From Isurus oxyrinchus (taxonomy: Eukaryota): DNA of 64,000 nucleotides. The notes under the pieces are model-generated. The model worked only from the letters and a program-made list of their open reading frames with translations, was not told where the DNA came from and searched no databases. Positions 20,356 to 51,649 of the stretch are shown piece after piece. Position 1 is the stretch's first letter, and each line of letters starts with the position of its first letter. The translations under genes and the position numbers were made by a program. The DNA lies in the NCBI GenBank assembly GCA_026770705.1, contig JANJGN010000546.1, forward strand, positions 124,001-188,000, given 5' to 3'.

Positions 20356-20604
20356 TCAGTTTTTCTGGAACCTGATCTGTGCGTATTCCGTGTCCTCGCT
20401 CCTGTGCACAGTCCTGTCACCGCTGGGCAGCTTTGAAAAGTTGATGTTGGCGTAGAAAAGCTCGTCGGGTTTGTCAGGGTTCCCATGTCCAACATCGCCT
20501 CCCACTGGACCTTCAGAGAGACCCCGGGGAGCTGGGGTCTCCCCCTCACTAGTTGTGTCTCTGGTTGTGTTCCGGGGCTCAGTAATCAGCACGTTCTGTT
20601 TACC
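20356..20604 (-). CDS. Gene A terminal exon with ITIM and ITSM
   Basis: ctctgtag|GGT, phase 0. Ends ...PDELFYANINFSKLPSGDRTVHRSEDTEYAQIRFQKN*. LFYANI is ITIM-type and TEYAQI is ITSM-type, the same order as in CD33-related Siglec tails. Confidence 0.9.
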   Translation of the reverse strand, partial: GKQNVLITEPRNTTRDTTSEGETPAPRGLSEGPVGGDVGHGNPDKPDELFYANINFSKLPSGDRTVHRSEDTEYAQIRFQKN

Positions 20605-23600
20605 CTACAGAGAAATGGAAACAGAAGGCATCCTCACATCATTTACTGGCACTGATACATTATTGTGCAGACTCACTTAATTCTCTCACATCGAATGAAA
20701 GAAACCACTTATGGCAGTGCAGCACTCCCTCAGTACTGACCCTCCGACAGTGCAGCACTGCCTCAGTACTGACCCTCTGTCAGTGCAGCACTCCCTCAGT
20801 ACTGACCCTCCAACAGTGCAGCACTCCCTCAGTACTGACCCTCTGTAAGTCCCGGACTCCCTCGGTAATGGCTCTGGTGAGTGACGGCTTGGATTCTGCA
20901 CTCAGGTGCCTGGTGTGAGGCTCAGTAACATGAACCTTGTAATCAGAGAGAGGATGAGAGAGAGAGATAGAGGAGGGATAGAGACAGAGTGTTATTAATC
21001 TATTAATGTTTGTATTGTAATTGCAAACTGTCTTTTTAAACAGAGGTTTAGTCTGTGTGTGTGCCTGTGTGTATTTTAATTGGATTAAAGCCAGCCAGTC
21101 TGGGTGCTTTGATGTATAGTAGTTTTGAGATGTAAACAAAGAGGTAAAGTGGTAATTTGCATTTTTAAATAAAACATTCAAAGTCTGACAGTGAAATCTT
21201 AAACCAATCAACGTTTATATTACTAATAAAATTGATACGATGAAAGGGGATTTATTATTGGAAGAGATGGAGTTCAAAGGTCCTGATGATACATTGCGAA
21301 TTTACCTTCAAACAGAAGCCATAAGACCATAAGACATAGGAGGAGAAATTAGACCATTCGGTCCATCGAGTCTGCTCCACCATTCATACATGGCTGATAT
21401 GTTTCACAAACCCCATTCTCCCAACTTCTCTCCTAACCTTTGATCCCCTTACCAATCAAGAGCCCATCAATCTCCGTCTTCAATACACCCAAGAGCTGGG
21501 TATAACTTGAGCAGTTTTGTGTATGCAGAGCAGAGGCTTGTAACATCAAAGCAGCTGTAAGCCTACACCTGTCTGCAAAGGAACCAAAGTGAAAGGAAAC
21601 TCATTTGGAATTTGTGATGTGAAAATGCTTTGCCTGGTGTCTGCTTAAAGTTTATGGGTTGTCTTAGAGGAGATTAGCTTGAGAATTTGTTATAAAGTTA
21701 TGCTAATACTAGTTTGTAGCCATGTGCATATGTTTAACTTGTGAAACTTAATAAATGTCTCATGTAGATTGATATAAAATCATCTCGAGAACTGGTTGTC
21801 TTGTTCCTGAATTTAGAGCTGCATCTCAAACATTCCACTGGGAAATATAGGTTATGACAGTTGTTTAAAGTTTCCCTCTGGGATTTTAAACAACAGCCTT
21901 TACCAGTTGCTGTGTCATAACAGAGAGACAGCGTGATACTGAACCATTGCTGACTCCACAGGTACAAATCAGTGGGTAACTGGGCTGGGAATCTGGGACA
22001 TGTGTTGTCTACACACTGAGATTGAAGCTTTGGAGTGAGTGTAAACAGCTCCTGTACCTGGTGCTTCACAGAGAGTGGACTGGGGGTCAATGCAATGTCA
22101 CTGGTCCCTGAAACTCTCTCCTCCATCGCTGTCTTTCTCCTGTAATATCACAATATCACACTGTGGTTATCATATAGCAGAGAGTCAGTGCAGCACAGAC
22201 ACAGAGCCCACTGTAACCTTACACCAACGACTGGACTCTCTCTTTAAATCACCTCTGCACAAAGCACAGAATCAAGAAGCTTGACACCATCCAGGACAAA
22301 GCAGCCCGATTGATCTACACCCCATCCACCACATTAAACATTCACTCCCTCCACCATGAACACACAGTGGCAGCAGTGTGTGTACCATCTACAAGATGCA
22401 CTGCAGCAACTCAGCAAGGCTCCTTCAACAGCACCTTCCAAACCCACGACCTCTACCATCTAGAAGGACAAGGGCAGCAGACACATGGGAACACCACCAC
22501 CTGGAAGTTCCCCTCCAAGTCACTCACCATCCTGACTTGGAAATATATCACCGTTCCTTCACTGTCGCTGGGTCAAGATCCTGGAGCTCCCTCTCTAACA
22601 GCACTGTGGGTGTACCTACACCACATGGACTGCAGCGGGTCAAGAAGGCAGCTCACCAACACCTTCTCAAGGGCAATTAGAGATGGGCATTAATACTGAC
22701 ATCACCAGTGACAGTCACATTCGATGAAAGAATTAAAAATCTCACAGCTCAATGTATTTACTGTGATCCTGCTGCACACACGCCCTGTCGAAGGAGCCTT
22801 TGTGGTTCCATTGTTAATCAAAGCAGATCCGAGTTACTACAACAACATGCATTTATATAGCACCTTTAATGTAGCTAAATGTCCCAAGGCTCATCCGGGG
22901 ATTGTTAGTCACATCTTCACCTGACTCTGAGGCACATGAGGAGATATTAGGGACAGGAGACCAACAGCTGAGTCAACAAAGTCAGTTATTAACGGGCATC
23001 TTAAAGGAGGAGCTGGAGATAGAGAATGAGAGACNNNNNNNNNNNNNNNNNNNNNNNNNNNNNNNNNNNNNNNNNNNNNNNNNNNNNNNNNNNNNNNNNN
23101 NNNNNNNNNNNNNNNNNNNNNNNNNNNNNNNNNNNNNNNNNNNNNNNNNNNNNNNNNNNNNNNNNNNNCAATGGCTCAGCATCCAGTCCTCTCTGGAGAA
23201 GCATTTCATTCCAAACCACACCAACCGCAGCCCAATCCCATCCCTTCCTCCCTCTCTCCCCCTCTCCCCCCGTGGGTTGTTTCCTGTTCCCAGGAATCTC
23301 AATCCCTACCCCCAACCCCATACCTCCTCACTCCCACTCCCCATTTCTCATTCAGTTGTGCTCGAACCTGATCTGTGCTAATTCCGTCTCCTCTTCCCTG
23401 TGGACAGACCCATCACCACTGGACATCCTCAAGACTTGGGGATTGGCGTAGAGAAACTCTTCAGGTTTGTCCGGATTCCCATGTCCAACATCGCCTCCCA
23501 CTGGACCTTCAGAGAGACCCCGGGGAGCTGGGGTCTCCCCCTCACTAGTTGTGGCTCTGGTTGTGTTCCGGGGCTCAGTAATCAGCACGTTCTGTTTACC

Positions 23601-50596: not shown

Positions 50597-50813
50597 CAGA
50601 AACGTGAAGCTGGGTTACAGGATAGTAGTTGTAACTATTCCTGCTGTCAAACTCTATTCTGAAAAAATAAGGTCCTGCATCTTCCAGTCTGATGTTGTTT
50701 ATAATCAGGGAACAGTCGCCATCTTTCAGGTCTCCAGACAGCCGGGTACGATGGCGGAATCTTTGATCCCTGTGACTGTGACCCTCGGAGTGAAAGGCTA
50801 TAGACCATTTAGG
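50597..50813 (-). pseudogene. Gene B V-set exon, 3' half only
   Basis: PKWSIAFHSEGHSHRDQRFRHRTRLSGDLKDGDCSLIINNIRLEDAGPYFFRIEFDSRNSYNYYPVTQLHVS G|gtaagt. Fused directly to promoter/exon-1 sequence. Confidence 0.9.
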
Positions 50814-51649
50814 CTGCTCCCTCTGTGTATTTAATTAGAAAGGGCTGATGTGTCTCTGTGAGACAAAATGAGGAAGTTGGTTCAAAGTGACAGAGCAGCT
50901 CATGTTTTGAGATGTTGGTGAACTGTTAACCCTTTGTGTCCTGACCCTGTGATGATATTTCTGCTCACAGGTGGACAGTCATTGACCAGGAATTTCTCCT
51001 GTGGGTCAGTGGGTTTCACAGCCAAATTCAGGGGGTCAGAATGTTGTGGGGTTCAAGACCCCATTCAGGGGACGTCTGCCCCACAGAGTAGACTGAAACT
51101 CCCCAGTGTCAGTACTGAGCAAGTGCTGCACTGTCGGATGGTCATTACTGAGCGAGTGTTGCACTATTGTAAGGTCAGTACTGAGGGAGATCTCCACTGT
51201 TGGAGGGTCAGTACTGAGTGAGTGCTGCACTGTCAGAGGGTCATTAATCAGGGAGTGCTGCACTGTTGGAGGGTCAGTACTGAGGGAGTGCTGCACTGTC
51301 AGAGGGACATTAATCAGGGAGTGCTGCAATGTTGGAGGATCAGTACTGAGGGAGTGCCGCACTGTATTAAGGTGCTGATTTAGAAGACAGGACAATGGAT
51401 TAGGAGCCCTCAGAACTCCCCCCGTGATTTCCAATCGATCCGTTACTTACCCAGGACCTGTCCGACTGCTCGCCTGGAGAGGAACTGCCCACACGCTCTG
51501 CTTGGGCTGAATGGGCCTCCTCCTGATCCTGTGTTATAGGCTCGAGGGGCTGAGTGGGCCTCCTCCTGTTCCTGTGTAAAAGGCTAAAGGGGCTGAATTG
51601 GCCTTCCCCAGTTCCTGTGTACCAGGCTCGAGTACATTAGGAGCATCAT

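Follow-up and report, generated by a model that had tools for sequence, protein, structure and literature searches.

Whether cartilaginous fish carry paired inhibitory and activating receptors of the Siglec (sialic acid-binding immunoglobulin (Ig)-like lectin) type is the question raised by a 64,000-nucleotide stretch of the genome of the shark Isurus oxyrinchus (GenBank assembly GCA_026770705.1, contig JANJGN010000546.1, positions 124,001 to 188,000 of the forward strand), called the window below and numbered from its first letter. According to an account in which sharks and other cartilaginous fish are unmentioned, the Siglecs regularly present in fish are limited to Siglec-1, CD22, MAG and Siglec-15, and the inhibitory CD33-related ones are missing (PMC7226832). 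A 2014 survey found neither FcR-gamma nor paired receptors of the leukocyte receptor complex type in cartilaginous fish (PMC4016189). A preliminary description of the window, made from its letters, proposed such a pair here, consisting of a gene A with inhibitory tail motifs and a gene B with an arginine in its membrane span. That layout finds support at the level of the gene family, in a conserved arginine, in splice joints and in outer parts that are 91-94% identical between the two receptor types. The best joint explanation, to which we give a probability of roughly three in four, is that the window covers a portion of a cluster in which elasmobranch genes for Siglec-like receptors stand in tandem, and that gene A is an inhibitory-type and gene B a decayed activating-type member, in the layout of paired Siglecs. 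The two are members of a large shuffling family and not an exclusive pair. Automatic annotation at NCBI already labels proteins of this family Siglec-like; a literature search found no published account of shark Siglec pairs.

Self-comparison, six-frame searches and splice-site inspection place all three family members found here in a row, in the order C, B, A, with their exons on the minus strand. Homology searches were done exon by exon. RNA contigs from three runs of three separate studies, X1, X4 and X6, were aligned to gene B. The exons of gene A as far as its transmembrane (TM) span, and then those of gene B, are as follows.

43880..43919, minus strand: gene A leader, coding part (MIGKSYFLLSLLQ), ending in phase 1; the sole leader-like exon found in the window
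34640..35013, minus strand: V_mid, the first V-set exon behind the leader of gene A, 374 nt, not a multiple of 3
31823..32191, minus strand: V_A, the V-set exon of gene A with the Siglec cysteines and the YFFR arginine
30713..31009, minus strand: gene A D2 exon (C2-set), 297 nt
28053..28328, minus strand: gene A D3 exon (Ig C2), possibly skipped
26914..27207, minus strand: gene A membrane-proximal C2 exon D4, 94% identical to P0216
25859..25955, minus strand: gene A TM exon, membrane span without a charged residue, ending in phase 2
50597..50855, minus strand: gene B truncated V exon, V-homologous only over 50801-50597, with YFFR kept; cryptic acceptor at 50856/50855
49442..49738, minus strand: gene B D2 exon, open, 297 nt
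49018..49113, minus strand: C2-exon remnant in the last intron of gene B, 84% identical to P0006 553-584
47153..47292, minus strand: gene B terminal exon, TM span with a buried arginine (LGIRAV), 13-residue tail and stop codon

The Siglec assignment rests on the outer domains. V_A matches the Pfam V-set and Ig_CD22 models, the latter describing the CD22-type first Ig domain, and its closest solved structures are Siglec-5, -7, -8, MAG, CD33, Siglec-10 and sialoadhesin (E 6e-16 to 3e-11). Its YFFRIE aligns with the YFFRVE of Siglec-5, which places the F-strand arginine where a Siglec has it. The Siglec cysteine pattern consists of a pair of cysteines in the B-strand motif, a single one in the E strand and an additional one in D2 for a presumed bond between the domains. 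As read from the sequence, it is present as SCVQIPC and DCSL in V_A and as SC, TC and SC in D2, the domain that matches the second domains of CD33, MAG and Siglec-5. Gene B lacks the first two V cysteines because half of its V exon is gone.

Near-identical outer domains are expected of paired receptors, and they were found both at this locus and in other species. D2 of gene A differs from that of gene B at 7 of 297 nt (97.6% nucleotide identity) and in 6 of 98 full codons (94% amino acid identity); the almost identical D2 of the preliminary description therefore stands, with its count of 6 in 99 residues corrected. All six differences in full codons are nonsynonymous and none is silent, and the seventh falls on the exon's final base. 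This contrasts with a divergence of 12-15% in the flanking intron. The numbers are too low for a test; a recent exchange of sequence, with selection afterwards, could have left this pattern. In the half V that gene B retains, 58 of 68 residues (85%) are identical to V_A, with YFFR kept. The V-D2 intron is 85-88% identical between the two genes, rising to 93-97% beside the exons, and homology stops 25 bp past D2, so that the shared V-set and the matching flanking introns described earlier are borne out. Such patchy identity fits a model in which short tracts have been exchanged between paralogues. Short C2-exon remnants of the P0006/P0014 type also lie directly downstream of D2 in both genes, at 30432-30515 in gene A and 49018-49113 in gene B, both on the minus strand, and A and B may both derive from longer receptors.

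The activating side of the layout depends on the last exon of gene B. Its strong phase-1 acceptor is compatible with the donor of D2, and the exon encodes a 29-residue hydrophobic span with arginine at position 11, followed by 13 residues without tyrosine and a stop codon within the exon, as the preliminary description had read it: a TM exon with an arginine and no inhibitory motif. A joint from D2 to this exon (49442 to 47292), with GT..AG on the minus strand, occurs in contigs of X1, X4 and X6, the shorter side being 58 letters long in X6; transcripts linking the arginine exon to a Siglec Ig exon, which the preliminary description had asked for, are thus present in three studies. The V-D2 junction (50597 to 49738) is joined in contigs of X4 and X6. 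At two sites (Leu to Gln and Arg to Gly) the contigs of X4 and X6 depart from the window and match the white-shark proteins P0151 and P0152; they therefore come from a paralogue or a related species. The X1 contigs agree with the window at both of those sites.

The same arginine is found well beyond this locus. A scan of 1.84 billion representative proteins with V_A gave 31 matches below 1e-30, and local searches for the arginine cassette followed. The cassette is C-terminal in eight proteins: P0151, P0152 and P0155 (Carcharodon carcharias), P0154 and P0156 (Scyliorhinus canicula), P0087 and P0006 (S. torazame) and P0023 (Chiloscyllium punctatum). It is internal to the P0192 model (C. plagiosum), and a related cassette occurs in P0171 of the stingray Hypanus sabinus. 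A search with the cassette alone (P0152, residues 299-348) returned three white-shark proteins only, with a word index too coarse for so short a piece. The arginine is unchanged in all 10 public sequences with the cassette, which cover three shark orders and one stingray, while its hydrophobic neighbours vary from shark to stingray. Shark cassettes are 76-96% identical to that of the window, and the TM exon of gene B is 96% identical to P0151 and P0152.

Intact receptors with this span, another expectation of the preliminary description, also exist. Both P0154 and P0156, at 272-273 residues, have the full leader-V-C2-TM(Arg) series, and the white-shark P0155 is a 270-residue V-C2-TM(Arg) model that lacks a leader. 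The outer parts of the activating-type P0151 and P0155 are 91-92% identical to the inhibitory-type P0216, and those of the stingray P0171 are 94% identical to the ITIM-bearing P0110 (ITIM, immunoreceptor tyrosine-based inhibitory motif). The closest match of V_A, at 97% identity, is in fact the second V domain in the white-shark arginine-TM protein P0151. The records of P0152, which has the arginine span, and of the inhibitory-type P0216, P0213 and P0189 lie on 646,030-bp contigs, taken here as one white-shark contig. As far as sequence comparison can tell, the two-sided family is intact in other sharks and one stingray, and mammalian-type pairing appears to exist in cartilaginous fish as well.

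At this locus, an intact and translatable activating partner was not found. The V homology of gene B starts in mid-exon (at about 50801-50834), with unrelated sequence upstream, and only the 3' half of V remains. From the cryptic acceptor the exon is 259 nt long and breaks the frame. Stop codons occur in all three frames between that acceptor and the V-homologous part, and none of the three exons contains a methionine codon. With no reading frame open ahead of the half V and no methionine available, gene B is a pseudogene, as had been proposed. An X1 contig joins a 31-letter leader-like sequence to position 50854; this sequence is one base off the leader of gene A and has no other match in the window, which implies transcription and splicing of gene B or of a twin. 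Since gene B is dead here, the locus is not the best exemplar of its family.

The inhibitory side of the layout lies in the tail of gene A, which is divided by an assembly gap; ITSM in the following lines stands for immunoreceptor tyrosine-based switch motif.

25054..25135, minus strand: cyt1 exon of the proximal cassette
23352..23600, minus strand: proximal tail exon with FLYANP and TELAQI, matching the first P0213 tail at 87% identity
23035..23168: assembly gap, intronic, separating the two tail cassettes and touched by no exon
22058..22139, minus strand: cyt1 exon of the distal cassette, 100% identical to P0213 56-80
20356..20604, minus strand: distal tail exon with the ITIM LFYANI, the ITSM TEYAQI and the stop codon, matching the second P0213 tail at 91% identity

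An uncharged span (25955-25859) together with LFYANI and TEYAQI in the exon at 20604-20356 is what had been described for gene A. The gap is flanked by two tandem cassettes of about 3 kb (20337-22751 and 23333-25750), 83-95% identical to each other and each composed of a cyt1 and a tail exon. An internal GT donor at 23368 in the proximal tail exon leaves phase 2, as the TM exon does at its end, and the proximal tail can therefore splice onto the distal cyt1 exon. The resulting chain of TM, cyt1, proximal tail to the internal donor, cyt1 and distal tail is consistent in phase and spans the gap in frame. Two-cassette gene models are also present at NCBI for the white shark (P0211 and P0213) and the basking shark (P0212 and P0214). 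In P0213 the FLYANP type comes first and the YANINFSKL type second, as in the window, so the order across the gap is that of an independent assembly. Two other views of the tail were considered and dropped: that the duplication is an artefact or the ITIM/ITSM exon belongs to another gene, in view of the double-cassette models in two other lamniform sharks, and that the proximal tail has lost both motifs, given that only the ITSM tyrosine is gone and FLYANP is native to that cassette type.

From the leader through the distal stop, the exon phases of gene A are consistent provided that V_mid is left out. Its 374 nt result from a 1-bp deletion near the 3' end, and the same domain is intact in the white-shark proteins P0152, P0153 and P0216. 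Because inclusion of V_mid breaks the frame, one has to assume either that splicing passes over this exon or that the deletion is an error in the sequence. Skipping of D3 is suggested by an X1 contig that joins an A-type D2 straight to D4 (loose end 49443), and P0216 likewise lacks D3.

If gene A is expressed as modelled, its product would carry sialic-acid-type V and C2 domains on an uncharged span, with a two-cassette tail in which the last cassette has an ITIM and an ITSM. By analogy with the CD33-related Siglecs, these motifs would be phosphorylated and would recruit SHP-type phosphatases. In the intact relatives of gene B, the buried arginine most likely pairs with a membrane aspartate of an ITAM adaptor (ITAM, immunoreceptor tyrosine-based activation motif), which could be DAP12-, FcR-gamma- or CD3-zeta-like. 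Gene B itself has lost the 5' half of V and cannot be translated from a signal peptide, although transcription and splicing of it, or of a near-identical copy, continue.

These features may be compared with known systems. In human Siglec-5/14 and Siglec-11/16, as here, a V-set domain with an essential arginine is followed by C2 domains, the outer domains are near-identical, the inhibitory partner has an ITIM and an ITSM-like motif, and the activating partner combines a short tail with a basic residue in the membrane. The activating copy in human Siglec pairs is often lost or a pseudogene, and the decayed copy at this locus mirrors the frequent human loss of Siglec-14 and Siglec-16. Unlike the human pairs, the elasmobranch V domains form a clade of their own, the inhibitory tail is a tandem double cassette, an addition made by this locus too, and many members have two V domains. 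Between the shark arginine cassette and the membrane exons of mammalian Siglecs no similarity was detected, though no test aimed at it was made. Siglec-14, -15 and -16 are without an ITIM and work with DAP10/DAP12 (PMC7226832). The nearest relatives are the NCBI-predicted elasmobranch "sialic acid-binding Ig-like lectin 12/13/14" and "CD33-like" proteins (Carcharodon carcharias P0151, P0152, P0155, P0216 and P0213), which have the same exon types and splice phases and are 87-97% identical exon by exon; in contrast to these, the window shows the loss of half a V in the activating copy, the loss of the ITSM tyrosine in the proximal tail and the frame-breaking deletion in V_mid. V_A scores about equally against MAG (Siglec-4) and CD33-type Siglecs, and D3 of gene A shares about 48% identity with domains from MAG-like shark proteins. 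However, MAG has five Ig domains and no known paired activating form, and the shark MAG-like P0143 falls outside the expanded elasmobranch clade. KIR, LILR, chicken CHIR and teleost NITR/LITR follow the same logic of ITIM versus charged membrane span in tandem, fast-evolving clusters, but they have other types of outer domain and are not sialic-acid lectins (PMC4016189 and general knowledge).

The preliminary description left open whether the shark system evolved independently or is ancient. In a quick V-domain tree of 122 columns, the elasmobranch sequences form one clade (Shimodaira-Hasegawa-like approximate likelihood ratio test 95), with activating and inhibitory forms interleaved, and this clade is separate from the mammalian CD33-related one with marmot Siglec-12-like proteins, from holostean CD33-like proteins and from shark MAG-like proteins, although the deep forks of the tree are weak. 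The tree favours a lineage-specific expansion with repeated shuffling, and so favours independent evolution, while its deep branches leave both that choice and orthology to the CD33-related Siglecs unsettled. Somewhat short of an even chance is the fuller proposal that elasmobranchs have a large Siglec family of their own, independent of that of mammals, in which an old arginine cassette predating the shark-ray split has been repeatedly shuffled onto outer domains about 90% or more identical to those of inhibitory partners. If this is true, cartilaginous fish would have a working ITAM adaptor pathway for receptors of this kind, and the six of six nonsynonymous differences in D2 would point to ligand- or pathogen-driven selection between decoy and counter-decoy. 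More generally, a large elasmobranch family of Siglec-like receptors with ITIM/ITSM and arginine-membrane forms would date paired receptors for glycan sensing back to the most ancient jawed vertebrates still living, or show an independent origin there, and such a family predicts a working ITAM adaptor in sharks.

Upstream of gene B lies the third member of the row, gene C, whose visible part covers 54173-59565 on the minus strand and whose 5' part is near or past the end of the window.

59565-58489, minus strand: C2 exons of gene C, upstream of gene B
57220-57131, minus strand: uncharged TM exon of gene C, 97% identical to the white-shark P0016
56276-56184 and 54286-54173, minus strand: tail exons of gene C

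Gene C gives rise to a different view of the arginine exon, in which it is still used as an alternative last exon of gene C, for a long activating isoform of the P0006/P0023 type, and the half V and D2 of gene B are dead passengers. A direct junction of the arginine cassette with a C2 exon like the one at 59.5 kb does occur in P0006 and P0023, the arginine TM exon is open and 96% identical to the white-shark copies, and the C2-exon remnant at 49113-49018 could be read in the same way. We nevertheless consider this unlikely: upstream of gene B, gene C has an uncharged TM exon (57220-57131) of its own as well as tail exons (56276-54173), and the observed joints run from D2 to TM rather than from C2 to TM, in reads that were aligned at gene B and not at gene C. 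The supposition that the short-tailed arginine forms are tail-less decoys, or partners of another membrane protein with the arginine kept for a different contact, seems about as improbable. It would suit the failure of the 2014 genome survey to find FcR-gamma in sharks (PMC4016189), but an unchanged buried arginine with a short tail free of tyrosine motifs is the standard signature of adaptor coupling, and the arginine is conserved from sharks to the stingray among hydrophobic neighbours that vary. This signature is known from Siglec-14, -15 and -16, KIR and LILR. It is very improbable that the half V of gene B and the duplicated tail of gene A are assembly artefacts of a repeat-rich, multi-copy region. 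There is a gap between the tail cassettes, and 33-bp satellite arrays and retroelement pieces are abundant; however, the cassettes diverge by 5-16%, more than a duplicated haplotype would show, independent white-shark assemblies have the same cassette order and the basking shark has double-cassette models too, and the RNA contig runs from leader-like sequence into unique sequence at 50854.

Several points weigh against the preferred reading of an inhibitory-type gene A and a decayed activating-type gene B in a tandem cluster. In the proximal tail of gene A the ITSM tyrosine is replaced by leucine, giving TELAQI as against TEYAQI in relatives. The link from the Ig exons of gene A to its ITIM/ITSM exon crosses the unread gap and is supported by other genomes rather than by reads. 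Gene A may itself be impaired, since inclusion of V_mid breaks the frame. The D2-TM joints in X1 and X4 have just 28 letters on the shorter side, and X6, the only robust spliced contig, cannot be assigned to this locus with certainty. That the family binds sialic acid, sends inhibitory signals and couples to adaptors is inferred, and one adaptor candidate, FcR-gamma, was not found in the 2014 survey of cartilaginous fish (PMC4016189).

Some further elements of the window lie around and between these genes. Far downstream of gene A is another V-set exon (1129-1452, minus strand), about 32% identical to the V domains of the family. Arrays of a 33-bp minisatellite are spread over the whole cluster in both orientations, at 5765-6253, 20715-20867, 23746-24030, 44740-45717, 51108-51365, 60048-61661 and 62454-63995; they surround gene B and are also placed directly upstream of each tail exon, within the cyt1-tail introns. 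The stretch 12354-16643 is a C-rich tandem array of 4.3 kb with a period of 12/35 bp, a GC content of about 0.62 and a GC skew near -1, adjoined by a G-rich array at 11574-12265. In the intron between V_mid and V_A, a reverse-transcriptase fragment (33985-34419, minus strand) matches the Pfam model RVT_1 with an E value of 2e-6, just under the gathering score.

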